Shown: one piece after another, positions 10,738-54,388 of the stretch
Layout: each line of letters starts with the position of its first letter
Numbering within the stretch: the first letter of the stretch is position 1
Source of the DNA: Epithemia pelagica
Lineage: Eukaryota; Protista; Bacillariophyta
Assembly: GCA_946965045.2 (NCBI GenBank)
Contig: OX337234.1
Span: 1,054,001 to 1,118,000, forward strand
Reading direction: 5' to 3'
Length of the DNA stretch: 64,000 bases
Notes under the pieces: model-generated
Seen by the model: the letters and a program-made list of their open reading frames with translations, nothing else
Databases searched by the model: none
What the model was told of the DNA's origin: nothing
Translations under genes and position numbers: made by a program

Positions 10738-10806
10738 CAACGAGACCCGAGGTCATTCCTCGGGCTGTTCTACAAGACGGTCGAGCAGCTCATCTATCTA
10801 TTACTA

Positions 10807-24800: not shown

Positions 24801-25455
24801 TTGTTCATGCGCCGATTGACAAGGATCCCAATTGGGACAAGATGACAGAAGAAGAACAAAAGAAAAGTGGCGTGTATGTTGAGATGCCGAGAGGGTTTGC
24901 ACAACCAGGGAAAGTCTTGAAACTTACTCGATCGTTGTATGGCCTAAAGCAGGCACCACGCAACTTCTTCCTTCATCTGAAAAGCAAATTGGAACAAGTC
25001 GGACTCAAGTCGCAGGAACACATTGACCCGTGTCTGTTCATGTCCGACAAAATAATCGTGCTGGTCTATGTGGACGACACATTGATTTACAGCCCCAAAC
25101 GCGAGTGGATTGATGAGTTTCTTGGGAAACTCCAGAATCAACAGAACGTGACACTCGAGATCGAAGACAGTGTAGCCGGATTTCTCGGCGTACACATTGA
25201 ACGCAACGATAGTGATGGTACTATCACGTTGACGCAGAAGGGCCTGATCAAGCGAATTGTGGAGGCACTTCACATTGGAGACAAACCCATGAAACGGCCA
25301 CCAGCATCGAAGGATCCTCTGGTGGCAAACAAAAATGGGACTCCAGCACAGTGCAAATTCAGCTATCCAAGTGTCATTGGAATGCTGCAATACTTGCAAG
25401 CACATTCAAGACCCGACATCACATATGCCGTCAGTCAATGTGCACGATACACCCA
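21812..25455 (+). pseudogene. pol: Copia-3 Pol (PR, IN, most of RT), interrupted at the His codon of YTH|DPK
   Basis: VIDSGAS, LLWHWKLGH, SIDQ, QNGVAER, KLKARFCARGD, LVYVDD, RPDITYAVSQCARYTH. Confidence 0.95.
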
Positions 25456-25551
25456 CATCTAAGGAAGGAACGGTACGCCAGATTATGGCGGTTTAATTAT
25501 CGATAAGAAAGCACCCCTAAGCGCATCCTACTAGAATCATCCGCGCGCAGG

Positions 25552-25760
25552 ACACGCGCACACCTACAAGAACACGCGCACACCTACAAGAACATGCGCA
25601 TGGCCCTTCCTCACGTTATTACTAAAAATGTGCTTTCCAGAACCAGCAAGCGCATGACCCACATTTCACCAACTTCAACACCATGCACAGTCAAGAACCA
25701 ATAGTCATCACATCCCTCCACCTTCATGCACAGTCAAGAACCAACAGTCATCACATACCC
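25552..25760. repeat. Left subterminal tandem repeats of the DNA transposon
   Basis: 20-bp unit ACACGCGCACACCTACAAGA about 2.5 times from 25552; CATGCACAGTCAAGAACCAA.AGTCATCACAT at 25682 and 25725. Confidence 0.85.
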
Positions 25761-25963
25761 TCCTATGTATGCACTCATCCTTGATTGTGTCACATCACCA
25801 TCATGCGCATTACTCCAGCATCAAGTGCAAGCAAGTTGAACACAGTGCATTTAACTAACACCATGCACACACTCCCACTAACAACCAGCGAATGCATGGA
25901 ACACAATACATGTAGCTATATAGGAGTAGTATATGAAATGAAACCAATTGTCACTCTGATCAA

Positions 25964-27956
25964 TCACTGCCACGACCGTTTTCGTGGCCTTTTAGAAGGC
26001 CTTGTCACAGCATCATCATCTGCATACCCCATTCGAGAGCGATATTGCCCATTGAGAAACATCATGAACCAGATACCGCGGTCGCCTGCTCTGTCTTCAC
26101 GAGCAATTTTCTCTTCCATATCCTCAAAATAGTCCATACCATCCTCATTCATACATCGACTTGAGTTCCAACTGCCTGAATATTTGAAGCAAGGATACCT
26201 TGCTGAGGATGTATCAATCATTTGATCAACACCATTTTCATTGTACCACCTTGGATTTAATTCAAATAGTTTCGCCTTGAAAGTGGTCTTGCCCATGTGA
26301 GTCCACACATCCCGGCAATCCACAAGGATGGTCAATATGAATGCCTCGTCACTTGAAGTGAATAACTTCAAGGCCTTTTCGCAATGTTCCTTTCCCTGCT
26401 GCTCAGTGTGGTCACCAAAATTGAAATCAATCACGGTTTTATGCATATTCTCACCATAGACACATGGACCAAACAATTGCAAGAGATATGAATAGGCATA
26501 GTTGTCACACTTCTCTCCTCTCAATAACAGAAATTCTTCCAGGGTAGGCATTGGCCCAAAGTCTTCACAGTCGTTCAAAAGGCATGGATACCTCCGCTGG
26601 AAATTACTGTCACGCCATAGATCAAGACCCACATGTTCTAGATTCAGCAACAAATTATCTCACATCTCTTTATGAGAAGACGACGTGATGAACCAACACA
26701 TTCACTCTTCGATTGACACTTACTTATGAATGCTTTTTGCATGGAAGCCAGAACATTTGATCGTTTACTTCGGAACTTGTCAAGCATATAAGGTGAATGT
26801 TCAATCCACCACTCCTCTTGTTGTTTTGCATCCGTAATACCTTTGCCTTTGAAATAGTGCTCAGTAAAATATGTTTTGCCATACTTCCCCCAAAGACCAT
26901 TCGGATCTGCCTTAGTATCTTCGGACATGGAGAAATACTTGACATAACGCCATGCCACCTTCCGAACAAATGTATCAAAGAACTTCTCCGATACCACCTC
27001 AGGCTTTTTCTTCGGCTTTTGCTTCTTATTCTTGTCCTTTTCAACAGAACCTTTGTGTGTAGTGGATGTTACAATCGTACTTGTCGGGCAAGATGATTGA
27101 TTATGGTGTACTGTTGTTGTCTGTGTTTCCTGTGCCAACTGATTTTGAATATCGTCTTGTAGAAGAGTTTCCATCGCCTGATCTGGCCCTGTTGTTAGCA
27201 AAGTAGATGACGAAGATGACGACATATCCGAAAGGGAAGAAACGTCGTTAGCAAAGGTATCACCTGATGCATTCAACCCACAAACACCCCCGTCATTAGA
27301 GCCGTCTCACCGACAAATTGTCCTCCTCCATTTTGTGCATCTAACAACTTACTGACAAGTCCTCCAGCAGGAAAATGTCTCTCATTAGGATCAAAATCAT
27401 CTCCATCATACTCACTGGGTCCATTGCTCATATTCTGCAATGCTCGTTGCATTTCAGGTCCAGTGAGAATATTTACACCGACGTCGTCTTCCTCCATGTT
27501 ATTAACTGCCGTGTTTGTTGGTTGCGCAAAACCAGATGATGGTTGTGTTCTCAGCCCACCCTGTTCATTATTGCTATCATCTGCTGAAGTCACATCGGTT
27601 CCATCTCTTTCTGAATTTGTTGCCTGCTCCAAAAGATTACCACTCCCTTCCACAGTTGTGCCTTCTTGTGCTTGTGCTTGATCGTTGTTCATCGAGATCT
27701 GTTCCTCTTCTTCCTCGTCATCAGAACTATCTTCTTGGAGTACTAAACCTCCATTGGCTGCTGCAATAAGAGCATCTTTGTTTGTAATTGTCCCGTCCTT
27801 GTTAGGAAGATTCTCTTTATTTCTTGTTGCCACTGCTGCCAAGATGCTTCTTCGTTGTCGTTCAACCTCTTTCTGATTACTTCCATAGTTTGCATTTCGG
27901 ACTGCTAAGGGTCGACGCCTCGTTGGAGCTGCATTTCTGGTGGTGACTCCTGCCAT
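25964..27956 (-). CDS. Transposon accessory gene (multi-segment, spliced), function unknown
   Basis: Three abutting ORFs. A GTAAGT donor near 26722 and a pyrimidine-rich TAG acceptor near 26638 join the last two. Acidic low-complexity N-terminus; C-terminal FTSSDEAFIL...W...KYSGSW...G..YF motif. Confidence 0.6.
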
Positions 27957-28520
27957 CGTTTATCTTGGATGCTCCGTCTGATTTATGACAAGGATGTGAA
28001 CAAGAGCAGGGTGACAACAAGTCCTCTGATGGACAACCATTCAAATTCAAATGCTGGAATGCTCCATGTTTGAATCATAAACTCCGTGTTTGAACGATGG
28101 TCATTTGGAGAACGTATGAAGATGAGCATAGGTGGTTTCAAGTACATCATACTTGTCAGATGGAACATTGGTGCATGGGTTTGAATGATTGTCATTTCCT
28201 TTCTAATGTCGACAGTGTCGGTATCCTCGGCATTGACACAGTGTTTGAATTCCAATCGCTGCTATCACCGTTGGTATCTAACCCGGCAGGCTGGATTGGA
28301 TTAAGTAAATACACACGACCGTTTGAAAATATTATGATCCGTTCATGTACATAACCGATTTTCAGTCGCTTTTATGCACCAACGTCGGCCGATTCACCCA
28401 ATGCGGAGAAATTCTGATATATGCCACAAGATTGACCACCGATGTCTCAATTTGCAGAAATCGATTACAGAGCATTTTTCATTCCGAACCAAAATCTAAA
28501 ACCACCAGCATCGTACCATC

Positions 28521-31500
28521 ATGGGCCAGCGTCGTCAAGTAAAAAAGAAGTCGCGAAAGAGATGCTCAAATACAAGCCAACAAGAGGAGTCCTTCATATC
28601 CTTTCAAGTGTGTCGTTTCTGTCAATCACGTTTTGATGCAAGAGGAATGAGCCGTCACGAAACAGTTTGTGAATTGAAAATGAACACACAAAGGAAATGG
28701 CCAAATGTTGGCGATGACAACAATGATTGTGCCAGTAATATGAATGCTGATCCAATGAATATTGATATCATGGACGATGAAACCACTATTCCGCATGCTG
28801 ACCCACCAAAAGCATACTATGTACCTGGTGATACAGATAATATTATTCTGCGCAACAGCAAGGAGTGCCCGGTTGATTTTCCTGCGTTCCTTGATAGAGA
28901 TGGGAAGCAATTGAAACTTCATAAACACGATGCAGCCTTGGTCTCACTTATGATGTTACTTCGGAAAGCTGGTTGCCCCAAATATTTGTACAATTCGATC
29001 CTGGCATGGTCGAGTGACACATACTCAAGATGCGGTCCTGGGTTCTTCCTGGACAACCATTCAAAGAGGAAAACGTTCATCGAAAAGTTTTCTTCCAAAG
29101 GTTTCAATTATCCCAAGGCAAAATTTTTCCCGGTACCAATGGAATTCACCCAAAAACAGGGTGTGGTTGTACCAGAGAGTGAGAAATCAATAACAACACC
29201 AGTATTTGATTTGATCAGTCAACTACAGCGTGTATTACAAGATCCCGATGCAACCAAGAAAGAAAATACGATCCTCGATGATGACGATCCGTATCGTCCA
29301 TATGTTCCAAACAAGCACATCCAAAATATACAAGACGGAGAAGTATTTCGGAAAACAGTGGAAAAATATAGAGATGATCCAGATGCCTTCGTGGTTGGTC
29401 TTGTCTGTTATATGGACAAAACACATGCAACAGGGGATGGAAGATATACATCGGAGCCTGTTGTAATGGTGCCATCTTTTCTAACGGAAACACAAATGAG
29501 GAAAGCAAGGCGACAGATCATCCTTGGGACTATTACAGACATGGAAAGAAAATCATCGGCGGCAAAACATATCCTCGATAAAGGGACTCCTTGCCGAAAT
29601 TATCATGCTCAATTGACTAAGATCCTCGAAGGTCTTGTCAGTATCCAAAAACAGGAAGGTTTATGGATGAAACTACGCCTCCATGGGATTATCAAAGTTG
29701 TCCGTTTGATATTGCCAATGATTGTTGTCAAAGGAGACGGGAAGTCTCAGGATAACCTTGCAGGTCGGTATGCCTCGCATCATCCAAGTGTTGGAAGACT
29801 ATCATGGTGTTGCAACATTAAACCAAGGGATAGCAGATACCCATGGCATGAATGTTCTTATATCAACGCTGCAAGTACATACAAAATGTGCTTGAATGCA
29901 TTGGGTCTTAATGAAAATCGAGAAAAACTGACTGAACAGGATGTTGATTACCAAGAGAGAGACAATGATACATTTTCGACTTTGACTGTTCCTACCTGTT
30001 TGAGCACATTGCAAGTAAGTCAAGAAAATAGCAGAGATGGAGGGGTCAATACCCTTGTGTCAGCTGCAAAAACCCAATTGCATGACATGGGACAATATGC
30101 AGTCGATCTTTGTTTTCCAAGGTTTACCTGGGTGAAGGAACCAATTCTGAACATGGGATTTTCTCGGCCAGTAGTTGTGATGTTCTTCATACATTGAAAT
30201 CTGGGATAATGAGATACATCATGATTGACTTTTTCACGTTGATGACAAAAACTGAACGGGCCATGTTTGATTATGTCTACAATTCAATCTTTCGGGCAAG
30301 TAGACAGACTGTATTCTCGTATTCATGGAAACTTGGATATCCCGGAACATCATTCTCGACCGGGATCAGTAACCTGTCAAAAGTAACTGCCAATGAGTGG
30401 GTTGGGATCATGTTTGCTTCAGCAGCTCTATGTGCCACTGCCAGAGGTCGCCTTATATTTGCGAAGAATATGGCAAAGAAATGGAACAAGGTGGTTGCGG
30501 AATGGAAAAAACGACAAGCAAAGCAAACATCCAAAACCACCAACAAGACATGTCAAGCGGACGTGGATCAAGTGCAAGAGACAAGTGAACTTATTGCTGA
30601 CAATGAGGATGATACTCCACCAGATGAAGAGTACGAACGTACACGTCTTGATGATGATGATAGTGTTGACATTGATATCACAGCTGAAACTGTTTTTGAT
30701 GATGACCCAGTTGCTTACAGGTCTATCTGGGATGTTGATGAGTGGGAACCATACATAGACTTCCTGCATCTATTCGAGACTCTTTTGTGTTTCAACAGCT
30801 GGATTCGTATGGATACATTCTGGGAAACAGACCCAGACTCACAAGAAGGACAAACAACAGCATCCAAGTCTCTCGAATCAGTGCGGATTTTGATGGATGG
30901 CATCAGGAGATATGCACCCAGGCTCGATAAAAAAGGCAAATTGATGTCCAACGGGTGGATGATACCAAAATTCCACAATCTCATACACATTATACAACAG
31001 ATTCAGAATTTTGGACCAGCACGACTGCTTGATGTGGAGTCAGAGGAAAGTAATCATAAGGAAATTGTGAAATTGAATGCAAAAACGGTACAGAAACGTG
31101 GAAAAGGAATTTTTGAGTCGCAACTTGCAGAAAATATCTGGTGGATGCAAAGCTTGGAAATGCTGCAGGAAGCAACAGGTCTTGAAGAAGATCATGTCAC
31201 CTTTCTCCAGGAAGGGAAGTCACCTTATGAAATAAGGAGAAAAAAGGGATCCCAAAACCAACTCCCTACCACATCAAAACCTCAAATAGCCGTGGAACGG
31301 TCATAGTAGTATCCATGACCAGAGAAAAATGTTTGATTCCAGTACCTCACACGAACGTACATACTTCTGGTGATAATCAAGACCAGTCATCAAATGAAAT
31401 AGACAAGGATCTTCCGTCTCCATTGGGTATGTCGATTCAAGTTCCAGGCACGACCAGAAAAGAACAAGACGGATCAAACCGAAACCAGACGAGTAGTGTA

Positions 31501-32300
31501 CACAGGCGATTGACAGCAGCACCACACGAGGAGGATGTGGTATCAGTGAATATCAAATTCCATTCCAAAACAAATCATGACATGACATTGCCACAGTTTT
31601 GTAATCACTTCTTTCGATTACATTACAAACGCTTTTTTCATCATATAGACGGGATGAGTGATGATCCAACAAATGAGACTTCAACCACACTGGAATTGTT
31701 CGGGAGCACAGAACTTAAGTTCGAAGACCCCAGGATAGGAAATATACGGGCTCATCCGAATTATCAAAGCGAGGGGCCATGGAGAGATTGGGTGATGGCT
31801 AAAGTTCCAAAGAAAAAAAGGAAACCTCTTGACGAGGTATACAACCAACCTCTCGGAGAATTTGATACCATCCTATGTCAAACGATATGCTTCATTCAAA
31901 TACCCATTACTCGAACAGACCACATACAAATACAACCATCACCGGTATGTCAACCTTCAACTTCACCCGAGATGACCCATGTCCTTCTCTGAACGACATA
32001 TGTACGGAGTGCAGCTGATATCGAGAAATCATCCGTTCTCTTTCAAAAATGGCGTAAGCGTTTTGACCTACATCGAATAGCTGAAATTGTCATGGTTCCA
32101 CTCCGGAATATTGTTGAGGTTGTTGGTGTAGTGGATGAGAACCCAGAAATGATTCAAGACCGTGATTTTATCCCCAACATATTTCCATTCTTCACTTGAA
32201 AAAGATTTGCTCCAAGAAGACAGTCGTAATTTGAGAAACTTTAGTGACAATGTCTGGGCCGTACGCAACATCAAAGAATGGGCTTCCGAATTCAATGAAA
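28521..32300 (+). pseudogene. Plavaka/CMC-like DDE transposase with frame disruptions (about 30110, about 31306, TGA at 31990)
   Basis: N-terminal CxxC..H..C finger, then IQDG, YMDKT, NYHAQL, VKGDGKSQDNLAGRY, CDVLHTLKSG, PKFHNLIH..IQNFG...EESNHK, IRAHPNYQSEGPWRDWVM and a terminal WASEF, matching the motif series I associate with Plavaka-type transposases. Confidence 0.8.
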
Positions 32301-32582
32301 GTGCCCGTGACAATCTCGAGAAACGCTCTAATGAAATGAAAGAAAGATTGAAACAATCCGTCAGCAATTCGACCTCATGATCATAATTTGCCTCTATGGG
32401 GGGTTGTCACATACCAGCACTCCCCTCCTAATCTCCCCCCCCCCCCCCAACCGTACGCGAGCCGACCAATTCAACTCAGAGTGTCACACACAAATTGGAT
32501 GAAATAGTAGATACTTTCCATCGTTTTCCAAAAGTCATCCTCAGTCTTCAGTCAGTTAGGCTATTCTACTCCTCTTCAAACA

Positions 32583-33709
32583 ATGATCAACCCATACAAA
32601 TCGAGGAAGAAAACAGTTCCACCCTTGGTGGTCAAACCAAACTTTCCAGTCACAAAGATACCTCCATCTAATGAAGAAATGATGATCAACCCATACGAGC
32701 TAGAGGAAATAGGGACCCCCATGGTCAAAACGCACTCTCCAACCCCGAAAACTTGCGACGGTGAACATGACAAGAAGCCACCGCCTGCGTCCAAATCAAT
32801 AATCAAATGTCATCCACTTCCTTCTTCTAAGCTTGATACCAAGGAAGAAGAGGAGAAGAAACTTCCACCAATCAAGCGCCCATCGTATCAGTTGATCCCA
32901 AACCCATATAAGAAGAAGCTCAAGGTTGCCGATCCATCTACTATTCCAATCTTGCTATTACATGACTCTCCTCCAATGTGTAAACCAAGAGCAAACCGAG
33001 ATAAGCTGCATCTCGAAGTTATTCGGTTCACCGAGCTTGTCAATAAAATCTATGGATCCAATGATGTTCCCCCAGAGCCAGTCTGTCCTTGGTGTTTTGT
33101 AACCGACAACCTTTCAACAGATCGTAGACTTACAGGAAAATGTTGGCATCGCTTCGGTAAATCTCTCTCATGTGCCGATTGTTGTTATGGTTGTGGAGTG
33201 CCCATGAACGGATGTGATTCAGGTGGGAATGAACGTTGTTGCACCGAAGCCCTGTATATCCATGATTCGATGAATATCACACGCGAAGAATCAGACATAA
33301 ACAAAGTTCCATTGGTGTGTAAGTCTTGCTTAAGGCCATGCAATTCTTATTCAGAATGCGTCTTCTCGCATGGTTGTTGGAACTCTTGCAACAAGTACTT
33401 CGTCTGGCGATTCTGTCATATTGCTGGACGGGCGTTGGTGTACTCACAATTGAAGCCCAATTGCAAAGGACCAGGCACGATTCCCAAACATGCACAGGAT
33501 ATTATCAAAACCCAACAGAGTTGATGTACAACGAACTGCGAGATCCGATGGAGTCTTCTCAGTACACATCTCCATTTTGTCATGTTCTTGACCAAGACTC
33601 CTGGTCTAAATGGCTTGTATCCATGTCTTTCGGTCGATACTACAATTACATGCCGTTCTTCCGTCATTGTTACACAGCCTTGATGTCTTCATCGAAACCA
33701 TTGTATTAA
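32583..33709 (+). CDS. Cys-rich putative zinc-binding protein, paralog 1 (ORFs 32583-33524 and 33326-33709, frameshifted)
   Basis: CPWC, CYGCGVP, CKSC, NKYFVWRFC, then WSKWL..NYMPFF in the second frame; three NPY motifs in the N-terminus. Confidence 0.6.
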
Positions 33710-33813
33710 ACAAAGACTCGACTTCTTCGAAAGGCAAACTTGTTACACAGCCTTGATGTCTTCATCGAAACCATTGTATTAAACAAAGACTCGACTTCTT
33801 CGAAAGGCAAACT
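33668..33813. repeat. Perfect 73-bp tandem duplication
   Basis: TGTTACACAGCC...GAAAGGCAAACT at 33668-33740 and 33741-33813. Confidence 0.95.
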
Positions 33814-33843
33814 GGGAACAGATAACAAGATTTATAATATATG

Positions 33844-34896
33844 TCAATGATCATTACCATCCATATTTCCACGTTCCAACTCCGCCGTCTCAGCCATTCT
33901 TTCGAGACAATTACGGAAGCACCTGACAAAGAGTGGCATGTAGTTGCGAAAACCAGCCGTAGAATGAGGCAACGAAAGCAACCATACTGCCCATGTTTTA
34001 TCAGATGCTCGGGCATAATCGTATGGGGCACAATCGTTATCATCAAAATAGAAACGGGATCGCAATTCCTCAAGCCAAACGCTGCGGACAATAGTAAACA
34101 TTGGCCAGGTGATTTGACGGGGAAAGTTCACACCATCGTAAAATGATGTTATTTGAAAAGTACGCGCCACAATATGGCGTATGAGCATACAGAACTGCCA
34201 CACGAAGTGCTTATTCTCAGATTCCACACAGACACTGCATGAATCCAAATCTGGTTGTGGAATCCCAAAAGGTATTGAGCGTTCGGGAATTCGGAAACAT
34301 TCCCTACACACCTGACAATGAAATGTTGGATGCCTGTGGCGGTGACATAAGTTACAACGCATCAAAAAATTCTGCTGCCAGATAACTGAATAATCGAGAT
34401 ATGCCGCACGTGTTACCACTGTAGTATTTCCATGATTGCACTGGTGATGTGGTGTGGGACGACCAAGGATAACACAGTATGGACAGAGTTTCTCACCTCT
34501 AAGCATTTCGTCCACCAACCGTTTGAATTCAGTCTGGATCTCATGACCGACACGCATCTCTTCTCTGAGTTGTTCTATGACTTGTGGTACATCTTCTTCT
34601 TCATTATCGTAATCAAAAAAGATCCTCCCAGCGTCTCTGTAACAAGGCCGATCATTCACTTCCAAGTTCCTGTCGTTGATCGCCCGCATTTCTCGTCGTC
34701 GTCTACGTTCCCGAACATAAAAATCTTCTTCCTCCGATTCATCTCCCGATTCATCCTCCGGTTGGTCCTCCGGATTGTCAGCCATTCTGTTTGCAGTCTC
34801 CTTCTCTTCGTTTTGCTGTGAATGCAAATACCTGTACTTGTTGCTTCTTCTTTGGATTTTTATGAAACCTCTGCTGTCATATGAACGAGAGTTCAA
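33844..34896 (-). CDS. Cys-rich putative zinc-binding protein, paralog 2
   Basis: CPYC, CNLC, CRECF, NKHFVWQFC, WAVWLL..RNYMPLF; same motif order as paralog 1. Confidence 0.7.
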   Translation of the reverse strand: MNSRSYDSRGFIKIQRRSNKYRYLHSQQNEEKETANRMADNPEDQPEDESGDESEEEDFYVRERRRRREMRAINDRNLEVNDRPCYRDAGRIFFDYDNEEEDVPQVIEQLREEMRVGHEIQTEFKRLVDEMLRGEKLCPYCVILGRPTPHHQCNHGNTTVVTRAAYLDYSVIWQQNFLMRCNLCHRHRHPTFHCQVCRECFRIPERSIPFGIPQPDLDSCSVCVESENKHFVWQFCMLIRHIVARTFQITSFYDGVNFPRQITWPMFTIVRSVWLEELRSRFYFDDNDCAPYDYARASDKTWAVWLLSLPHSTAGFRNYMPLFVRCFRNCLERMAETAELERGNMDGNDH

Positions 34897-35378
34897 CTGG
34901 AAATAGATCCACGGATAACCGATCGGTCGCGTTTGTGTACAGAAATCGCCACACTATACTATTCACTGTGAGTATTACCACATACTGTGAGGATAAGTGT
35001 AATCATTCCCAACATGGTCGCGTTTCACTCGCTGGGCTGACCTATCGGTGTGGCTTTGCAAAATTTCCATGGACATGGAACAATGACATGCTTCTAGAAC
35101 TCGAATGGCTCCAAATTTTCGTAGAGACCATTTGGGTATCATTTGCATGGACAGTAAAGGCTCTGAACTTGTCTATCATCAACCAAAAGACTTGCAATAG
35201 ACCCTACCGGTGTGGTGTTGCCGTCGTCCCAAAATTCTATGGACATGGAGCAACGACATGCTTCTAGAGCTCGAATGGCTCCAAATTATCTAGAGACCCT
35301 TGGGGTATCATAGGCATTGATTGATGGTAGGTAGTGGTTTTGCTGATAGGTGGACATGGTCTTGTATATTAGAAATCT

Positions 35379-36314
35379 CTATTCGTCACTAGATTTCTGG
35401 CCCGACGCCAAGCCTCCAATTTCATGAGAATTGTCATCCTCGTTTTGTGTTACGGTAGCACTCAAAGATCTTGCATTTGTGCTAAAAAACCAACCAATCG
35501 TATGATTTCCCACATTCTTGTCTTTAGGTGGTATGGAGTGTGTATGGACAGATGTTCCATGTCTGATGATTCTCCCGTCCCATGCGATCGCAATGCCATG
35601 GAATAACCGGATACAAAGCCCATGATAAGTCTTGTCCTTATGCTTTATAAGGACATTGGGAAGGACGAAATACCAATTGTTGGTGCTGCCCGGGTTGGTT
35701 TCTGTCCAGATTGTAAAGGACACTGATGCATCATGAATATCATAGTGGCTTGCATTCATCAAATCGCAACTCAAAATGATGGATGATGACACACCCCTTT
35801 CGTTTCCTCCCAATTCGTTTGGGACATCCAAACCGAAGTTTGTTTCCAGGTGTCTGAAAGCCGATAACACACCAGGGAATTTCCTCTCACAGAATCGCCG
35901 AACACCTCCACAGATTTTTGGCAATATATTCATCATGTTTGGAGATATTTTGAAAAGTTTGTCAGAAAAGAATGTACTTCTGCCACCCGTTTTTGTGCAC
36001 ACACCAACAGATGTCATGGTCCCCATATCACCATGGTTACACCTTGCATTGGCTGATCTCTCTAGTGTACCGCTCTGCGCGAAGTGACATGACCTCTTGT
36101 GTAACAATGAAAGTAGGTTTTTGTCATTTTGCTGAAGTGTTGTCACTTTGACATGGCTGATGGTTTCGTTTTTACCCGCGTACCCACGTGTCCGAACAAT
36201 GAATGTTGTATCTTCTCCGGTTTCCCTTACATCAAACAGAAGCGGACGGACCGAAGTATCAGGCGGAGGGGACAGGTTTCTATATATAATGCTCCATGGA
36301 CGTACTTTCGGCAT
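35379..36314 (-). CDS. TET/JBP-like 2OG-Fe(II) dioxygenase domain
   Basis: R..HGDMGTM..VG N-terminal motif, NASHYDIHD (HxDxxD), WYFVLP, GLCIRLFHGIAIAWDG and distal RHGT His, consistent with a double-stranded beta-helix. Confidence 0.72.
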   Translation of the reverse strand: MPKVRPWSIIYRNLSPPPDTSVRPLLFDVRETGEDTTFIVRTRGYAGKNETISHVKVTTLQQNDKNLLSLLHKRSCHFAQSGTLERSANARCNHGDMGTMTSVGVCTKTGGRSTFFSDKLFKISPNMMNILPKICGGVRRFCERKFPGVLSAFRHLETNFGLDVPNELGGNERGVSSSIILSCDLMNASHYDIHDASVSFTIWTETNPGSTNNWYFVLPNVLIKHKDKTYHGLCIRLFHGIAIAWDGRIIRHGTSVHTHSIPPKDKNVGNHTIGWFFSTNARSLSATVTQNEDDNSHEIGGLASGQKSSDE

Positions 36315-39025
36315 CCTGTCTTGTTAGCACTGGCTTTATTCAGCAGTGTTTCACGATACCACACTCTAAGAGAATGTTGGTCATTTGGTGTGATTTTTGG
36401 TCTGGACTTTTCACTTGTATAATGATCAGGGGCCCAAAGTGGAGAACCACTTTCGACATCAGACGCTTGGTAGCATTCATGGACAACTCTCTTTGCACTT
36501 TGTGTCCAATCAAAACACCAACACTTGACAACCTTTTTGAGGAATGCCCCACCACTTGGTTGGCCGTCCGAATGTCGTAAACGCAGCCAGGATATAGGTA
36601 GTGCTACCAAAGATGAAGTGCATTCCGATGTTGCATACCCAGTATTCATTATCATTGCCGAAGTATAAAAAATACCGGCCAAAGGGATGATAACGATCAC
36701 GTCATGGAAAATATGGTCCATACAATCATCACAGTTTTTCTTGGATGTGCGACAATGGAAGATTGTATCGTCAAACGCAGACCACATGGTTTTGGGGTAT
36801 TTCCGATGTCCCTTATGTCGTTGACAGCGATTCAGTACACATTCTACCAAGAAGGCACATGGAGACCGGGTTGTTAAGAACTTCGGGTCACATTCTGTCA
36901 CATGAAGCTTGTTGTCTTCGAAACAACAATGGCTTGCTGGATCTTCCGTCACCTCACCAACCACGTCTTTCATTTGTTTGTACATGTTAGGTAATTTTCC
37001 CATGATTGTCTGGAGGTCTGTTGGTGTGATGTCGTAGTCTTTCAGAACCTTTGTATAGCAGATGCCAAACATTCTCCGATCATCATTGCTACTGAGACAG
37101 AGTGATAGTAAGTCGCATAGTCTTTTTGCTACCTTGTCCATGTCAGGAATTCCAAAAAAACACATTTCTGTATGATCGGATTCATTTGGTTTGGAGAATT
37201 TTGTCGTCAAATGGCTAGGTTTCTCAGCCTGTCGTCTCTTATACTTATTCATCGTTTCATGTGTTAGTGTCAACTTCGATAGGCCCTCTTGTCGTCGTTG
37301 CTTGTTCGTGGGTAGTCCCCTGGATGAACCAATGGTCTTACATCCTTTTCTTTTCCTTTCCGGTGAAGTATTCTGTTCGTCAGTATCGTCTTGATTACCG
37401 TGTATTGGAGACTCGTGAATCTCCTTCGTACCTCGTTCGTCTTGTATGCGCTGATCCGTTTGTGTTGTCGTGTTGATGCTACTTCCCTTGTTATGGTCGT
37501 TTTTTGTCATTTGGTCATCGTTGTTCTTGCTGCTACCTTTTTGTTTGTCGGTACTATCCTTTCCTTCTTTGGTTTGTGTCGCATCATCTTGGTTGACACT
37601 GTCATTGTGACAGCTAGACGGATTATCACTGTCAGGTGTGTTGTTGGCATTCTTAGACCCGTTCTCTCCTGAATTTCCGTGTTGTTCGTAAGCAACAATC
37701 TCTTGCTTGCCACATTCCTTGCCCTTTTGTTTGTCTGTAGAACCGTTGCCATCTCTGCTTTGTATCTCTTCTCCTTGTCCACATTCATCTTGGTGACTGG
37801 AGGTTGCTTTCTGACCGCTCTGTCTGTTCCAATCATCCCTCTCCTGATTGTCCTTGGAATTCCAACTAAGTTTGGATAGGCCATCCTGCCCTCCACGACT
37901 CGCTGTAGTGTGATGAATGCCCTTTTCTCTCTCTCTACGAGGTGATTGATTTGGTTGACTATTACCTCTATCAGTTGAGGGACGGTTAGGCTCTCTCTGA
38001 CGGGTACGCCTAGTATGTTCGTTGTTTCCAGGACGACTGTCTCTAAGTGACAAATGGTGCCTGGAATGTTCGTTGTATCCAGGGAATCTCTCCCAATCCA
38101 TCGGATGTCGATTAGACCATTGATTGTGGCTATCTCTATATACCGAATGGTGCCTTGTATGTTCTCTGGAATGTTTGTTGTATCCAGAGAATCTCCTCCA
38201 ATCCATCGAATGTCGATTAGACAATTGATTTTGATTATCATGTCTTCTTTTTCTATCCCGGTAAGTGTTTTCCATGATTTGATCTCTTCTCCCTCTAGAC
38301 TCGTCTTGGTGGTTATCATGGTATCCATGTTGGTCTTGTCGTTCAATGACTCCTCTTCTAGTTTGTTGGTTATCTTGATCGAAATGTGAATGACGAGACC
38401 CATGATAAACAGATGTATTAGATCCTCTCGATCCTGGATGATCATCATTGAATCGATTCTGTCCATGCTGACAATACACTGGCCTGTCATGTTCAGGTTG
38501 CGAACCCCACTCATTTGTTCTGGGGCTTTGAGCTGTCGACAGGACGTTGTTCTGATTCCGTCCTCCCCACAGCCCATGTGGATTCTCTCTCTTGTCCTTG
38601 GTTCTTTCGTTATCATGTTGGGTTTGCTCTGTTCTATGTCTTTCTTCAGGCAGCTCACTCCGGTTACCCCAATTCGCAGGCATTGCAACGGAACGTGATG
38701 AGTTATTTCCTCCCCATTGCTGGTATTTAGCCTTCTCACCCTCTGGTGACTGATAGATTGCTTTGTGTTCAGAAGGATGAGTATATTTTCTTTGAACAGA
38801 ACGTGTCATAGGACAGAAGTACAATAGACTTTGAATATCCTGGCTGCACACCATACATGTGTTGTGGCCCCGCTGCATCCAATCTCCAACACATTCCCGA
38901 CAAAATGTATGTCTACAAAGAAACAGTTCGCAATCCACTTTTCTGGTCATACAAATCGAACAAACCTCGGGCTTGTATTTTGTCTCAACTCCTCTTTGTT
39001 CTAGTGTTGACGGCTTGTTACTCAC
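36227..39025 (-). CDS. RING-HC protein with long low-complexity linker and uncharacterised Cys/His-rich C-terminal domain
   Basis: CSIC...CRHTFCRECV...CMVC; no ATG upstream of the RING in this frame; internal duplication NRH.MDW.RF.GYN.HSR. Confidence 0.75.
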   Translation of the reverse strand: MSNKPSTLEQRGVETKYKPEVCSICMTRKVDCELFLCRHTFCRECVGDWMQRGHNTCMVCSQDIQSLLYFCPMTRSVQRKYTHPSEHKAIYQSPEGEKAKYQQWGGNNSSRSVAMPANWGNRSELPEERHRTEQTQHDNERTKDKRENPHGLWGGRNQNNVLSTAQSPRTNEWGSQPEHDRPVYCQHGQNRFNDDHPGSRGSNTSVYHGSRHSHFDQDNQQTRRGVIERQDQHGYHDNHQDESRGRRDQIMENTYRDRKRRHDNQNQLSNRHSMDWRRFSGYNKHSREHTRHHSVYRDSHNQWSNRHPMDWERFPGYNEHSRHHLSLRDSRPGNNEHTRRTRQREPNRPSTDRGNSQPNQSPRREREKGIHHTTASRGGQDGLSKLSWNSKDNQERDDWNRQSGQKATSSHQDECGQGEEIQSRDGNGSTDKQKGKECGKQEIVAYEQHGNSGENGSKNANNTPDSDNPSSCHNDSVNQDDATQTKEGKDSTDKQKGSSKNNDDQMTKNDHNKGSSINTTTQTDQRIQDERGTKEIHESPIHGNQDDTDEQNTSPERKRKGCKTIGSSRGLPTNKQRRQEGLSKLTLTHETMNKYKRRQAEKPSHLTTKFSKPNESDHTEMCFFGIPDMDKVAKRLCDLLSLCLSSNDDRRMFGICYTKVLKDYDITPTDLQTIMGKLPNMYKQMKDVVGEVTEDPASHCCFEDNKLHVTECDPKFLTTRSPCAFLVECVLNRCQRHKGHRKYPKTMWSAFDDTIFHCRTSKKNCDDCMDHIFHDVIVIIPLAGIFYTSAMIMNTGYATSECTSSLVALPISWLRLRHSDGQPSGGAFLKKVVKCWCFDWTQSAKRVVHECYQASDVESGSPLWAPDHYTSEKSRPKITPNDQHSLRVWYRETLLNKASANKTGCRKYVHGALYIETCPLRLILRSVRFCLM

Positions 39026-40653
39026 GGGTGATTTTTTGATGATTCTTCAGGGCGTCCCTCAATCGTAGTTGTAGTGTCTTCGACTGTTTTCCTATGTCCC
39101 TCTTCAGGGAATCCCTCGCTCGTAGTTGTAGTCTCTTCCGCTGTTTTCTTGTGTCCCTCTATCTTCTCCGCACCAAACATGTGGATGTTACTCTTGATCT
39201 TTTGTCCACACTGGGGACACCATACATTATGATACTTGAACCGTATTCGTAAGCAATTTCCGTGAACCAGATGTCCACATGGGATGAGGGTACAGACTTC
39301 GCTGTCTGTATCTGTTTTCAATGCCCTGTTACAGCATACGCAAGAATCTGGACAATATACAACGGTCGGTAGCAATCGATTTATATCTCTCTTGGAAATT
39401 TTGGAGTCAAGTAACACCTCCTTCGGTTCTAATCCCACCTTCGGGCACGGTATGAACAATATGTCACAATCCGTAGTCCACGTCTCTGAACACCCACCAT
39501 CAGATAGATCGACGTTCTCCTTGTATTCGTATTTATCGGTATCACGTGAAAACCCCACTTCAACGGGATCATCGTCGCTGTTACCATCGAAATTGTCAGG
39601 TCCCAACACCAAAGGAGAAATCGAATTGCCACCAACAGCATGCTCTAGTCCTCTCGAAAATTCAGTATTGTACCGTATTTGATTACTCGAAAAACAATTG
39701 GATATCGTCATACTCTTGTCTATCTGACCTTCTTTCCGACCCGGGTTTGGTCGACTACTCATTATGTTTCCAAGCATTCTGATCACAATAGCTTGTGGCA
39801 TTGGCTTTGGAGTATCCTTCTTAGGTTCGGGCATTTTCACAATGCGATATCGCCACTTGTTGCATTCCTTGTTTGTATCATGTGTTGTTTCATCTTCTTC
39901 CACTAATGATGGGTCATAACATAGTCTGACAGGCGGGGCACCTTTTGACGTATTGACCAGGTCCCATTTCCGTAGTACATGACGCGTCGTTCCTTCCCAG
40001 TATTGGTCTGATCGATTATGTATTGGTTCGTAGATATGAAGTATCTTTTTGTCGATTTCGAAAGCCAATAAAGCTGGGTCGCTGACATCAGTTGCTGTTG
40101 TCAAGGCAATGATCGCCAATATCAGTGTGTTCGGATCCTGTTGTCTCCATGATGACATAGGAATTTTCTTAGGAAATGGGTTCCTGTTTGCTTCATCAAA
40201 TGTTACTTTGTCAACATATACTAGGTTCTGATGGTTGTGATGGACCATCAATTTCAAACAAGTATAGAAAGACTCAATCGGCATGCCCGTCCTTGAAGTG
40301 TTGTAGCAAAGATCTCTCCGACGATGTCTATGTGGGATATGCAAAACACGCGTTGTAGGGTCCTGGTCATTCATCAACCCACTGTAAGACATGCATAGTG
40401 TGCACCTAAATAATGTCTTGATTTCGACATGCGTGTTGTCCTTCCCCATACTCTTAGCATACTGGGTTGCTAGCTTCATGGCCGACTTGATGTTCTCGTT
40501 GTTTCTGTTAGTTTGTTTTTCCGCAAACTTGTCTAAGTAACCGTCACCAATGTTGTCGATGGATTCATTTGAGTCCCATGAGTCTTTTCTTCTCTTCTGG
40601 TTTACTATAGGATCAAGAACGTGTGGAATTTCAATGAAAGGCGGTGGTACCAC
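39022..40653 (-). CDS. RING-H2 protein, 543 aa, with a possibly degenerate Ulp1/C48-like central region
   Basis: CVCC...CGHLVHGNC...CPQC. The Ulp1-like resemblance (LLAFEIDKKILHIYEP) is weak. Confidence 0.7.
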   Translation of the reverse strand: MVPPPFIEIPHVLDPIVNQKRRKDSWDSNESIDNIGDGYLDKFAEKQTNRNNENIKSAMKLATQYAKSMGKDNTHVEIKTLFRCTLCMSYSGLMNDQDPTTRVLHIPHRHRRRDLCYNTSRTGMPIESFYTCLKLMVHHNHQNLVYVDKVTFDEANRNPFPKKIPMSSWRQQDPNTLILAIIALTTATDVSDPALLAFEIDKKILHIYEPIHNRSDQYWEGTTRHVLRKWDLVNTSKGAPPVRLCYDPSLVEEDETTHDTNKECNKWRYRIVKMPEPKKDTPKPMPQAIVIRMLGNIMSSRPNPGRKEGQIDKSMTISNCFSSNQIRYNTEFSRGLEHAVGGNSISPLVLGPDNFDGNSDDDPVEVGFSRDTDKYEYKENVDLSDGGCSETWTTDCDILFIPCPKVGLEPKEVLLDSKISKRDINRLLPTVVYCPDSCVCCNRALKTDTDSEVCTLIPCGHLVHGNCLRIRFKYHNVWCPQCGQKIKSNIHMFGAEKIEGHKKTAEETTTTSEGFPEEGHRKTVEDTTTTIEGRPEESSKNHP

Positions 40654-40735
40654 ACCATCACCTGTCTCCTCATTTCCCTTGTTTATGGAAGCACAACGTC
40701 TCTAAGACAAAGAGATCAATCATTTTTGAGATTGT

Positions 40736-41923
40736 CTAATCCTTCTCGATTCTTGGCAAGTCGCTCGAACATCTTACCTCGTTGTCTGCGGTTTTTTCAT
40801 CGTCGTCGCTTATAATCTTCCTGACCTCTTCCACACGGTCTGATTTGAGGGCGACTTGGTTCGACGTTGTAATGGAAGTTGGTAGTACTTGTTCCTTTCT
40901 CTCGTCAGTAGGATCATTACCAGCGACGACCTTCTGTCTCTTTTTTGCCGGCGAGTCTGTACTCCGACGTTGCACGGCAATTTCTTTCGATTTCCTGGCA
41001 GACAGTAACTCTTGTTTTTCTATATAATGCAGTAGATCGTAGAACATACCGCCATCGTCTCCGTTTCTTCCATATTGTACCAAAGAATCTCTTTCTTCAA
41101 GGTACATCTTGAACCATGTGTCAGGCATCGTATACAACAGTGCTTTCTCCATTTGGATATTGGAAATCACGTCCATGTTCTCGTCCGATGTCGATTCTGA
41201 GATGAAACGGTGTATGGCCACCATATGTTCGATAACCCATGCGATTTTACCAACAGGTACGAGACGCGGTTTCCTGTAAAGGGAGGAATCATCTAGAAGG
41301 TATCGTTTCAATGCTTCTCCAATCCCACCGATCCCCTTGCGTGTCTTCTTAGAGACTAAGCCATGAGAGGAAAGAAATCTGATAATGGTTTGTCTCAGAT
41401 TCTCAGCACTGTCTATCACTGTCGTCCCAAATGCCTGATTCCAAATATTGGAAACAGGACTGTAGAGAGTCTTTTTGAACAACAGTCGAGCAACCATTGG
41501 AGTCAACTTGTCATCATCATCCATCTCGTTCTTAATTCTTGTGAAACAGAAAACGGAGTGACAGATGATATCTTGGAATGCAGGCGAATAACAGATTGGT
41601 AGGAATATCTTCACATAATGGCCGTCATGTGGTACCTCCACTGTTGTCCATTTTCCTGATTTGTCTTGGAAAACACTTTCATACCAATTGAGGACACTTT
41701 CGTATGTAATGGGCATAATACCGGTGTAGTGAGATTCCTCGCTTGTGTGTGTTCGAAGTATATGATTGGTACCAGAAACAGTCATAGTCGACACGTCCTT
41801 TCTTTTGTTTCGCACTTCATCATTCATTGAAGAAGGGTCACCAGGATTCTTGGCGGTCGGTGGCTTTTTGTAGCGAGGGCCCTTGATGCGGTTGCCCGCC
41901 ATTTTGTACTTGTCACGATGCAC
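40736..41923 (-). CDS. Hypothetical protein, 395 aa
   Basis: Long ATG-initiated ORF co-oriented with the neighbouring cargo genes; no confident domain. Confidence 0.6.
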   Translation of the reverse strand: MHRDKYKMAGNRIKGPRYKKPPTAKNPGDPSSMNDEVRNKRKDVSTMTVSGTNHILRTHTSEESHYTGIMPITYESVLNWYESVFQDKSGKWTTVEVPHDGHYVKIFLPICYSPAFQDIICHSVFCFTRIKNEMDDDDKLTPMVARLLFKKTLYSPVSNIWNQAFGTTVIDSAENLRQTIIRFLSSHGLVSKKTRKGIGGIGEALKRYLLDDSSLYRKPRLVPVGKIAWVIEHMVAIHRFISESTSDENMDVISNIQMEKALLYTMPDTWFKMYLEERDSLVQYGRNGDDGGMFYDLLHYIEKQELLSARKSKEIAVQRRSTDSPAKKRQKVVAGNDPTDERKEQVLPTSITTSNQVALKSDRVEEVRKIISDDDEKTADNEVRCSSDLPRIEKD

Positions 41924-41928
41924 TTTTT

Positions 41929-43240
41929 GTGTAGCGTCTTTGTTTCAACAACAACAACAACAACAAGGGTAGTCGAGGAAGCGCTTTAATTGTAGCGTCT
42001 TTGAGACAACCTTGTGTACTTGTCTAAACAGTAAAAAGTGTGCGCTGAATTGTGTAGCGTCTTTGGTTTGGTCCTGAACTCTGGTGGTAACAAAACAACA
42101 ACCAAATCGAAGGAATACACTACGACGCGCTTTATGTGTAGCGTCTTGTTCGTTGTGATCCAACAATCGGTGCCAGAATTTGCTACTCCAAAACCAGGGG
42201 TTGGTTGGTTGTCCAAGCAATCTCGCGACAAGAATAGAACAGAAGCAACTGGCTACCACCGTGTCACACTGCTTGCTTTGGGTCTGTTCTATTCAAGTCG
42301 GAGTATCACGAGGACAGGAGGGTTCTTGATAAACAATCTAACAGATAGCCCGAAACCGCTTTAATTGTAATAGCGTGATTGGAATGAAGGACAGAGCTGA
42401 GTGAAACAAGCAACAATCAGACAGATGCCCCAAGCCGCTTTAATTGTAGCGTGGTGATTGGAATGGCAGAGCTGCAAGATAGTGCAAGTGTCAAAGATAG
42501 GACAAATGTCGACAATATTTCGATTGCTCTGGTGGTCGTTCTTCTTCTTGGGTTCCTCTTCTTCTTGTTTTCCTGTTGTAGCGGTTTTGGAGTGAAGGTC
42601 GTGGTTGAAAGGAAGCAAGCAACAATCAGACAGATGCCCCAAGCCGCTTTAGTTGTAGCGTGATTGGAATGGCAGAGCTGCAAGATAGTGCAAGTGTCAA
42701 TGTCTCGAATGCTCTGGCCGTGCTTGAGTTCCTCTTCCTCTTCTTCTGGTGCAGCGGTTTTGGAGTGAAGTGTTGTAGCGGTTTTGGAGTGAAGGTCGTG
42801 GTTGAAAGGAAGCAAGCAACAATCAGACAGATGCCCCAAGCCGCTTTAGTTGTAGCGTGATTGGAATGGCAGAGCTGCAAGATAGTGCAAGTGTCAATGT
42901 CTCGAATGCTCTGGCCGTGCTTGAGTTCCTCTTCCTCTTCTTCTGGTGCAGCGGTTTTGGAGTGAAGGTGGCTGAAGAGGAAGCAAGCAACAAAAAGGTG
43001 ACTGAAAAGGAACCAAGCAACAATCAGACAGATGCACCAAGCCGCTTTAATTGTAGCGTGATTGGAATGGCAGAGCTGTTAGGTTGGTGAAAGAAGTTGG
43101 ATAGGTGAAAGGATTGAAAAGGGAATCTCGGCAGAGAGAAAGCAAGCAACAAAAAGGTGGCTGAAAAGGAACCAAGAAACAATCAGACAGATGCCCCAAG
43201 CCGCTTTAATTGTAGCGTGATTGGAATGGCAGAGCTGTTA
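41929..43240. repeat. Right subterminal complex repeat array of the DNA transposon
   Basis: Core CCGCTTTA(A/G)TTGT..AGCGTG..ATTGGAATG at about 42356, 42435, 42644, 42841, 43042 and 43201; TGTAGCGTCTT at about 41930, 41991, 42053 and 42136. Confidence 0.9.
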
Positions 43241-43965
43241 GGTTGATGAAAGAAGCTGGATAGATAATGGGATTGAACAGGGGAATCTCGATAGCGTTGG
43301 GTGATCGATTGCTGTTGTTGCTGCTGCTGCTGCTGCTGTTGTTGTTTGTTGTGGTGTGTTGGGTGGAGGTGGAGGGAGATGAATGAGCATCGATTCTGGT
43401 GGTCGTTGATTGTTGAATGACTAGTATGCTAAGTTGTTCGGTTTTGTTCGATGGATCAGAGTGTCGAGTTGGTAATCCCCGCGGTTTGGGTGATTGGGAA
43501 GGAGGATCCATCTGAGACATTCTTTGGGACATCCATGTGCGTCAGTCTTTCTGGCAGCTGCTGTGTGATGTGGTGGGAGTGGAAATTAGTGATTCAAAGG
43601 TGAGGGGACAGACGCTTGCGCATGAGGGTTGCGTCATGCGCGTCTCGGGGGGGTCGAGCGCGCCAGATAGTTGTAGTGCGTATTAGCGGAGTGTGGCGCG
43701 CGTTATTCGTGGTTTGATCGCGGGCTTGTGCGCATTAAAATTGTTGCATGCGCGTGATAGTCAGCTCGATCTCTAGAACTAGCTAGAGAAATGTGCATTG
43801 TTAGACCTAGATTTGCAGATTTAGTTGGGAAAGCAGGATTATAGTTAAAAACTGCGCATATAAAAATAAACTGCGCATAAAAAATTTTAATTCGGCGAAT
43901 TTTTTCTAGAAATTCGCTTTTGGGGGTGGAAATCAAGCGCCAGGGCAAATTTCCCTCCTTAGATG

Positions 43966-44589
43966 CATGATCCTAAGACAACACACGAAGAAGCATTAGA
44001 AAGGATCGGACAATACTTGAAAGGGACAATGGAGAAAGGACTCATCCTCCGTCCAACTTACGACAATCTCAACGTTGATTGTTACGTTGATGCAGACTTC
44101 GCGGGTCTGTGGCCACATGAGGATAAGATGGATCCGTCATGTGTCAAGAGCCGAACTGGGTTTGCCATCTGCATCGCAAACTGTCCAGTCATTTGGCAAA
44201 GCAAGTTGCAATCGGATATTGCAACATCAACAATGGAGGCGGAATACACAGCGCTCAGTGTGGCGATGAAATCTGTGTTGCCTCTTCTGGAACTTCTGAA
44301 AACTGTGGCACGAGGTGTCGGCATGACAGAAGATCAGAGCACGAAATTCAAAACCACAGTGTGGGAAGATAACAATGGTGCCCTGACGCTCGCGAACATG
44401 GAGCCGGGCAGGTTCACACTAAGATCAAAGTTCTATGCGATTCGAATGCACTGGTTTCGATCGCACTTAAAGCCGAATCGAGTCACGGTTGAAAAGATCG
44501 AGACATCAAAACAACGTGCAGACATAATGACAAAGGGTCTGACGAAAGATACATTTGAAACAATTCGGAAGCTACTGTGTGGATGGTAG
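43966..44589 (+). pseudogene. pol: Copia-3 RT C-terminus and RNaseH (continuation of 21812-25455)
   Basis: HDPKTTHEEALERIGQYLKGT, YVDADFAG, TMEAE, EDN, RADIMTK. Confidence 0.95.
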
Positions 44590-53185: not shown

Positions 53186-54388
53186 TCACTCACTTTTGCC
53201 GCTTGTTCGGAAACGACGTCGTTCAGAGAGTTTGGTATTCAGCCAGAACTTTTTGATTTGGTCCACGGACCTTCTTGGCAAAAATGTGGATATAAGATTC
53301 CAGCGGTTTCCAAATCTTTGTCGTTTCTCCAAAATAATCAGCTTCTCCTGAATGGTGAGAGGCGTTTTGAGGAGATTGGGGTCAATCACGTTCTCAAAGT
53401 GATCTCGAATCTCGATACAAGTTCGACCTGGAAGTTGGGCTTGTATGACAGAGTACTTGATGTTCTTTTTGCGGTACTCACGAATAATTTCTTCTTCCTC
53501 TACCGTCCATGGCAATTGATGGTGCTGAACCTTTTTGTCGAGGGTACCGAGGAATGTACTCTTGATACCCATGTCACTCGGAGTGACGTTATCTTTAGCA
53601 TTGCCGACAATGGACGAATCATGGACGAAAGTGGGTGTCTCCCATCGAGCAGACGCGTCATGATCACGCTTGAGGGTGCCTTCTTGAGACAGTTCTTCCC
53701 AGGTATCAGGGTGGGGTTCCCGGGATTCTGGTTGTGGAAGTCTCTTGCCCTTTAGAGTTGTGGCCATCCGGGACTTAAATAGAAGGCGCTTGCCCTTGAT
53801 GGGTGTAACGCATCTAATATGTTTCGGATGAATGGGCTTCTTGGTTTTTCGGGAAGTCTCGGGCGTTGGAAAGGAAAATAAGCGATCGTCCTTGTATGTC
53901 TCATTCATGGTTTGTGATTCCCAAGCGTCGTCGAAATTCTGAGCACTCAAATCGGCGTGTGATTCCCACGATTCATCGAGATCAGCAGCATTCGAATCCT
54001 CTTCTGATTCCCAAGAGTCGTCGAAATCTTGACTAATCGAGTCATCTTCTTGAACAGATGAATCATTGTCGTTATTGGCTGCTGTGGGAAACGGTGACTT
54101 TTTGATTGGAAAGGACACAAAGTTTTTGGGCAGATGTCGGGGATTCGGGGGAAACCGCATGTCATTATCGGTGAAATCGAACATGTCCACCAATTCGTTG
54201 GTCTTGAGCTCAGCATCGGATTGCTCAGAGACTATTTGTTGTGCAGCCAGGAGAATGCTCTCGTCATCCCACGAGGAAACTTTGTGGGTCTTGAGGGGAT
54301 TTCCTTCATTTTCAGCCGATGATGATGAGCCCACAAAGCGAGGCTTGGTCGGTGTAATGGTGGGAAGTGGAACAGTGCGTGAAGTCAT
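53186..54388 (-). CDS. Myb-domain protein, 400 aa (copy B)
   Basis: Two C-terminal Myb repeats; paralog of 16132-17334. Confidence 0.88.
   Translation of the reverse strand: MTSRTVPLPTITPTKPRFVGSSSSAENEGNPLKTHKVSSWDDESILLAAQQIVSEQSDAELKTNELVDMFDFTDNDMRFPPNPRHLPKNFVSFPIKKSPFPTAANNDNDSSVQEDDSISQDFDDSWESEEDSNAADLDESWESHADLSAQNFDDAWESQTMNETYKDDRLFSFPTPETSRKTKKPIHPKHIRCVTPIKGKRLLFKSRMATTLKGKRLPQPESREPHPDTWEELSQEGTLKRDHDASARWETPTFVHDSSIVGNAKDNVTPSDMGIKSTFLGTLDKKVQHHQLPWTVEEEEIIREYRKKNIKYSVIQAQLPGRTCIEIRDHFENVIDPNLLKTPLTIQEKLIILEKRQRFGNRWNLISTFLPRRSVDQIKKFWLNTKLSERRRFRTSGKSE

Follow-up and report, generated by a model that had tools for sequence, protein, structure and literature searches.

Genes for TET/JBP dioxygenases are carried in fungi by DNA transposons of the KDZ, Plavaka and other groups (Iyer et al. 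2014, as cited in PMC12730594; Kojima 2025, PMC12730594), and an anti-silencing role, the same as that considered below, has been proposed for them. PlavakaB, the lineage of Plavaka with TET genes in fungi, has CATCA..TGATG termini and produces target duplications of 2-3 bp (Kojima 2025, PMC12730594). Giant Plavaka elements of 17-19 kb with several accessory genes (PAG1-3) have been described from red algae in a Bostrychia preprint (doi 10.1101/2025.02.11.637652). One of these accessory genes has a putative 2OG-oxygenase domain, fused with a DNA-binding part of ParB type; the best HHpred match of this oxygenase is a non-TET protein, 2OPW. A 6mA-methylase/SET gene is also present. In human TET2, Naegleria NgTET1 and Coprinopsis CcTet, 2OG is bound by an Arg of the last strand (R1896, R289 and R385, respectively), a residue that has been called characteristic of the superfamily. 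The algal enzyme CMD1 of Chlamydomonas, a vitamin-C-dependent 5mC glyceryl transferase that makes 5-glyceryl-methylcytosine, still has this Arg in its sequence, turned from the pocket, showing that loss of Arg function in a TET-like pocket can be accompanied by a change of co-substrate (PMC7854593).

The 64,000-nt stretch of DNA analysed here (the window) contains, on its complementary strand, an ORF of 311 codons with an ATG start. This ORF probably encodes the catalytic, C-terminal half of a TET/JBP-like Fe(II) dioxygenase domain, itself the last domain of a giant protein encoded by a PlavakaB-type transposon; the gene is broken at two simple repeats in the window copy, as is the transposase gene, and in intact copies the enzyme is proposed to oxidise 5mC (Table 1). 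As in the fungal TET transposons, a TET-type dioxygenase gene lies inside a cut-and-paste element with a 2-bp target duplication and PlavakaB-like termini, CATCT here and CATCA in fungi, and relatives of the window protein give weak matches to the fungal Tet-like model PF20515. Unlike in the fungal systems, the dioxygenase forms the C-terminal part of a two-RING-finger protein some 1,770-2,150 residues long, it lacks the last-strand Arg and falls below threshold with the Pfam TET models, and the host looks diatom-like. The host assignment, which agrees with the non-fungal host proposed in the first-pass annotation, comes from weak leads, namely the atlas taxa of the TET-like cluster and of a leishmanolysin gene that is also found in the window, and incomplete matches in metagenomes of marine, sediment and biofilm origin. 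The element resembles the red algal ones in its size and its several accessory genes, but neither the ParB-like part nor the 6mA-methylase/SET gene was found in it, the fusion here being to RING fingers. CMD1 differs in being a host gene, whereas the TET-like gene of the window is transposon-borne and gives no sign of ascorbate use.

Table 1. Positions of the transposon, its genes and the catalytic motifs in the window
Feature	Position	Strand	Basis or remarks
Whole element, 18,510 bp	25456..43965		TIRs, target duplication, split copia pol
Accessory ORFs A, B, C, 5' of transposase	25964..27956	(-)	Conserved in L002, L003, L005
Plavaka-like transposase, two overlapping ORFs (28521-30197 and 30110-31306)	28521..31306	(+)	Atlas features
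Cys-rich accessory ORF F	33844..34896	(-)	tblastn matches in L001 and L005, beside TET-like gene
TET-like ORF, 311 aa	35379..36314	(-)	C-terminal catalytic half of TET/JBP-like double-stranded beta-helix
Last strand N270-F277	35484-35507	(-)	NHTIGWFF of TET-like ORF
H252	35559-35561	(-)	RHGT (R251/H252) of TET-like ORF
H190/D192/D195	35730-35747	(-)	HYDIHD of TET-like ORF
N-terminal ~315 residues of TET-like module	36230..37180	(-)	End of ORF M, residues ~615-932, different frame
(TA)4 tract, -1 switch from ORF M to TET-like ORF	36281..36288		Frame comparison, public contigs
ORF M, 932 aa	36227..39025	(-)	RING-HC, long low-complexity hydrophilic linker, then N-terminal part of TET-like module
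RING-HC finger, ORF M residues 20-66	about 38828-38968	(-)	Pfam zf-C3HC4_3
T6 run (A6 on coding strand), -1 switch between ORFs R and M	39032..39037		Frame comparison, public contigs
ORF R, domain of unknown function and RING-H2	39022..40701	(-)	In one frame with ORF M after T-run change
RING-H2 finger of ORF R	about 39208-39348	(-)	Pfam zf-RING_2, E 8e-4, below cut-off
Predicted intron, 76 nt, phase 0, GT..AG (GTAAGA...TCTTAG)	40702..40777	(-)	Sequence; would link ORFs G and R in phase
ORF G, likely first exon of large gene (ORF itself 40736-41923)	40778..41923	(-)	Sequence reading and L005 comparison

The ends of the carrier element were located by the sequence CATCTAAGGARGGAA, which is found at 25456-25470 (+) and 43951-43965 (-), two matches where 0.02 are expected by chance. 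These 15-nt TIRs agree at 14 of 15 positions, end in CATCT..AGATG, and are flanked by a 2-bp target duplication, CA, at 25454-25455 and 43966-43967. The insertion divides a Ty1/copia pol ORF into two parts (21812-25462 and 43963-44589), and without the insert and one CA the copia frame is continuous again, ...YTH being joined to DPKTTHEE.... The same left end, with a TA flank, is present at an unrelated independent site (L003:14369). Four of the five terminal bases are those of PlavakaB (CATCA), and the 2-bp duplication lies within the PlavakaB range. The TET-like ORF lies within this TIR-bounded element, as had been noted at first pass. Atlas features point, for the two transposase ORFs, to Plavaka (PF18759) clusters at 0.94-0.95. 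The ORFs themselves gave no Pfam match, and only four database relatives of the transposase were found; P0164, which is 58% identical to the window transposase, matches PF18759 with an E-value of 0.0031 and 17.2 bits, below the cut-off of 26.3. A -1 frame switch divides the window transposase near 30105-30125, beside short T-runs, where P0164 reads through.

The ends of the element had also been described as CpG-rich, which is weakly borne out: the observed/expected ratio is 1.19 in the last 500 bp, but 0.72 in the first 500 bp and 0.76 for the element as a whole. Subterminal tandem repeats with GCGC cores are present at both ends (25552-25600, 25682-25774 and 43849-43885), examples being ACACGCGCACACCTACAAGA in 2.5 copies and AAACTGCGCATAAAAAAT in 2 copies; these are possible transposase-binding sites. 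That the element modifies its own ends, as earlier suggested, is pure conjecture. Several further repeats were observed in the element, including a perfect 73-bp tandem duplication (33667-33813, 2.0 copies, 100% matches) between accessory ORFs E and F, and satellite-like arrays near the right end (42574-43290) with 197-bp and 159-bp units in 2-2.5 copies with 91-92% matches. The Cys-rich ORFs at 32583-33524 (+) and 33844-34896 (-) share a weak 'NK(Y/H)FVW(R/Q)FC' motif (BLASTP E 3e-4). Elsewhere in the window, two ORFs of ~400 aa at 16132-17385 (-) and 53186-54388 (-) carry Myb DNA-binding repeats in pairs towards the C-terminus (Pfam E 1e-12 to 1e-13); the two could be paralogous or belong to another repeat family.

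The HYDIHD, RHGT and NHTIGWFF motifs named in the first-pass annotation are all present. Neither the ORF nor a profile of its 21-sequence family matched any Pfam family, and a search of PDB sequences gave no significant match for either, no solved TET being found by sequence; the sole PDB match of the A3 family profile was a restriction-endonuclease-like chain at E 0.53, which was rejected as a chance match. A word-indexed search returned 20 relatives of the ORF (best E 6e-70). An exhaustive profile search with the TET-like family returned 1,041 cluster representatives at E<=0.001, with 276 reaching E<=1e-30, giving a clade of at least 1,041 clusters (clustered at 50% identity) that are mostly from marine eukaryotes. 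Many of these relatives are 550-650 residues long, with the matching part at the C-terminus.

Residue conservation was counted over 163 relatives. The HxD..H iron triad is retained almost throughout (H190 in 161/162, D192 in 160/162 and H252 in 155/157), as is D195 (160/163). By motif spacing, D195 occupies the position of TET2 N1387, NgTET1 D234 and CMD1 D350, which hydrogen-bond the N4 of 5mC, while CcTet, which accepts 6mA, has a Gly at this position (PMC7854593, PMC11040006). Since D195 is nearly invariant at the N4-contact position, a cytosine-type substrate is the best guess for the window family. The first-pass annotation had remarked on the missing 2OG-binding Arg of the last strand, and the absence extends to the whole family: six residues ahead of the conserved aromatic, where the window ORF has N270/H271, the relatives have Asn or His, and Arg in only 5 of 154. 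The co-substrate pocket is unusual in lacking this residue. R248 (137/155) and R251 (144/157) are nearly invariant beside the distal His ('DGRxxRH'), and an upstream Arg in an 'AR...GD.G.M' motif, R91 (122/133), is a candidate counterpart of TET2 R1261 and CMD1 R244. R248 or R251 may hold 2-oxoglutarate instead, or a different co-substrate may be used.

The strongest alternative to a 5mC oxidase is that a TET-like fold carries out another chemistry, such as hydroxylation of T (as in JBP), action on 6mA (as in CcTet), or catalysis with a co-substrate other than 2OG (vitamin C, as in CMD1). We regard this as unlikely: the almost invariant D195 at the cytosine-N4-contact position speaks against 6mA or T, the nearly invariant R248 and R251 could stand in for the missing Arg, and CcTet requires 2OG and hardly uses ascorbate (PMC11040006). 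A more elaborate version, which we hold to be somewhat less likely still, is that the TET-like clade may have rewired its co-substrate pocket for a chemistry other than 2OG-dependent 5mC oxidation (e.g. CMD1-like hypermodification), coupled here to two RING fingers, so that at its own copies the element would rewrite a DNA mark and also attach ubiquitin to silencing factors or chromatin. Oxidation of 5mC remains the preferred reading.

Whether the dioxygenase gene is a genuine part of the element can be judged from the other copies. In L005, whose proteins are ~50% identical to those of the window copy, the genes follow the same order, A-B-(C)-transposase-F-TET-R-G, and L003 keeps part of it. 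Because the order is kept at this level of divergence, the TET-like gene can be assigned to the Plavaka-type transposon as a long-standing component. A RING finger is also found in the L005 counterpart of the RING gene. Of the long TET-like relatives, none other than the helicase fusions has a RING or another Pfam domain, so that the RING fusion appears to be specific to the lineage of the window element. Helicase fusions account for 2 of the 56 members of alignment A2, including P0146, a metagenomic protein of 1,602 aa in which the TET-like domain (1341-1599) follows a DEAD/Helicase_C helicase (Pfam E 1e-6 to 6e-7). No similar transposase was found in the genomic contexts of the relatives P0014 and P0034.

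It has also to be considered that the gene is a passenger remnant, a fragment of a host or foreign dioxygenase that was picked up and has no role in the life of the element. The broken frames of the window copy would fit this, as would L002 and L004, where a transposase is present and no TET-like gene lies within 10 kb, and L001, where an isolated TET-like fragment (9905-11235, 53% identical), probably a decayed remnant, is next to a piece of ORF F in inverted orientation and has no transposase in the surrounding 10 kb. These observations are outweighed by the gene order kept between the window copy and L005, TET-like gene included, by the retention of the catalytic residues, and by the positions of the breaks, since the window copy and L005 are broken at different points (in L005 at a 'PLAGVF' strand), implying an intact ancestor. 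A passenger origin is thus very improbable, and the TET-like gene is better read as part of the element.

The TET-like ORF, annotated at first pass as a dioxygenase, is not a complete gene but the C-terminal fragment of a far larger one, with ~300 N-terminal residues of its module lying upstream in another frame. A transposon-borne TET-like dioxygenase is upheld in its fold and its Plavaka-type carrier, but not as a complete ORF. The end of ORF M resembles the N-terminal part of intact relatives (BLASTP E 7e-24 for P0010 and 1e-8 for P0021); ~45 more relatives also match its residues ~615-932, and the longer relatives of the TET-like ORF have this N-terminal extension. The two ORFs lie in different frames and share 88 nt, and homology crosses from '...GCRKYVHGAL' in one to 'RNLSPPPD...' in the other at the (TA)4 tract. 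A 26-nt GT..AG 'intron' over this junction was considered and rejected, as it would remove a conserved 'YVxGAL' that is kept in relatives. Upstream, the RING-HC finger of ORF M scores above the Pfam cut-off of 27 (29.8 bits, E 5e-7). In L005 the parts corresponding to ORFs G and R form one uninterrupted ORF of 977 aa, without a break at the point of the predicted intron, and no joint across this intron was found in the contigs of run X3, a run of unspecified kind; the search for RNA runs returned none.

Three public runs of the same organism gave contigs that match this stretch at ~99%, and these were compared with the window. Contigs spanning the two sites lack 2 nt at 36281 and have one additional T after 39031, beside the T6 run, the two frame-restoring forms coming from separate short contigs and not from one molecule; other copies in the same organism appear to be free of both large-gene breaks. 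Many contigs of run X3 end at the (TA)4 and T6 repeats, and a homologue search of the assemblies with ORF M residues 560-932 found no fused M-TET ORF. When both observed changes are applied, a frame of 1,773 codons is open from 40701 to 35379, comprising the RING-H2, the RING-HC, the low-complexity linker and the TET-like module; with the predicted intron and ORF G included, the predicted protein has about 2,150 residues. L005, a diverged copy from a public assembly that is 49% identical, reads '...RRYVSGALHRNL...' unbroken across the point equivalent to the (TA)4 tract. As assembled, the window copy is unable to make the enzyme on account of these frame breaks, which could be real slippage mutations or assembly errors, indel errors in assembly being possible since all three breaks of the window copy, that of the transposase included, lie in simple repeats. 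Programmed ribosomal frameshifting of the kind found in retroelement gag-pol might be suspected from two -1 changes in slippery repeats (A6 on the coding strand and (TA)4), but is hardly credible given the in-frame forms of both sites in contigs of the same organism and the diverged L005, which is in frame at the first site and broken elsewhere.

The fold was examined by structure prediction. An AlphaFold model of the TET-like ORF (pLDDT 74.6, pTM 0.78) is rich in beta strands by DSSP, as the first-pass annotation had it, and in Foldseek matched TET2 first (E 5e-8), followed by CMD1, FTO, CcTet and NgTET1. Because this ORF is without the first strands of the module, the intact 608-residue relative P0034 was also modelled (55-row alignment; pLDDT 84.6, pTM 0.87). 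This model scored 15.0-16.2 with CcTet, CMD1 and NgTET1, 11.7 with FTO/ALKBH3 and 10.6 with a prolyl hydroxylase, and the best 25 Foldseek rows for the full-length module were all TET-type. In a full-length predicted model, the module part contributed by ORF M aligns to TET2 1136-1300. AFDB cluster matches are named 'Tet-like 2OG-Fe(II) oxygenase' or 'JBP1/TET oxygenase', and atlas features link the protein at 0.97 to PF12851 clusters, and also to PF20515 clusters and a mostly diatom cluster. The best structural matches, TET2, NgTET1 and CcTet, share with the window family the HxD..H triad, the HxDxx(D/N) motif, the last-strand aromatic and, with R91 as its candidate counterpart, an upstream conserved Arg; they differ from it in overall sequence (~10% identity), in the 2OG-binding Arg of the Rx5-aromatic motif, which is Asn or His in the window family, and in the His/Arg after the stacking aromatic, which is missing there. 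Neither PF12851 nor PF20515 was reached at gathering score by the TET-like ORF or its 21 close relatives, and PF20515 was touched by 5 of 56 relatives, all below threshold (best E 0.0014). With one defining residue absent and the Pfam thresholds not reached, the family is best described as a divergent TET-like clade and not as a canonical TET/JBP member. An AlkB/FTO-type repair enzyme or RNA demethylase, or a prolyl hydroxylase, deserves next to no weight, as neither an AlkB protein nor a prolyl hydroxylase was the best match in the structural comparison proposed at first pass.

The intact protein would consist of domains of unknown function, a RING-H2 and a RING-HC finger, a low-complexity linker and the TET-like module of ~600 residues. 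In such a copy, Fe(II) would be bound through H190, D192 and H252, and a methylated cytosine would be flipped out, contacted by D195 and oxidised at its methyl group. Diatom 5mC is confined to transposons (PMC12344493), and its oxidation would counter the 5mC silencing that diatoms aim at these elements; we infer an anti-silencing role for the TET-like enzyme from this restriction of 5mC together with the fungal precedent. The RING fingers might function as a ubiquitin ligase or in targeting to chromatin.

TET-bearing transposons are already known from fungi (PMC12730594), and giant Plavaka elements with accessory genes from red algae (10.1101/2025.02.11.637652); no account combining diatoms with a Plavaka-borne TET was found in the literature searched. 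What is new here is that the last-strand Arg has been lost throughout the family, that the breaks of the window copy are exactly placed and characterised, and that modelling of the complete module separates it clearly from AlkB/FTO. The window copy itself is smaller news, being broken. Its lineage adds a two-RING fusion and an altered co-substrate site to the known systems, and the clade as a whole offers a large, conserved and uncharacterised TET-like group for biochemistry. Mobile elements able to erase the DNA-methylation mark with which their host silences them have their clearest candidates among transposons that carry TET genes. With a family that has recently multiplied in a diatom-like alga, this strategy would reach a further major lineage of eukaryotes, in which 5mC is directed at transposons.
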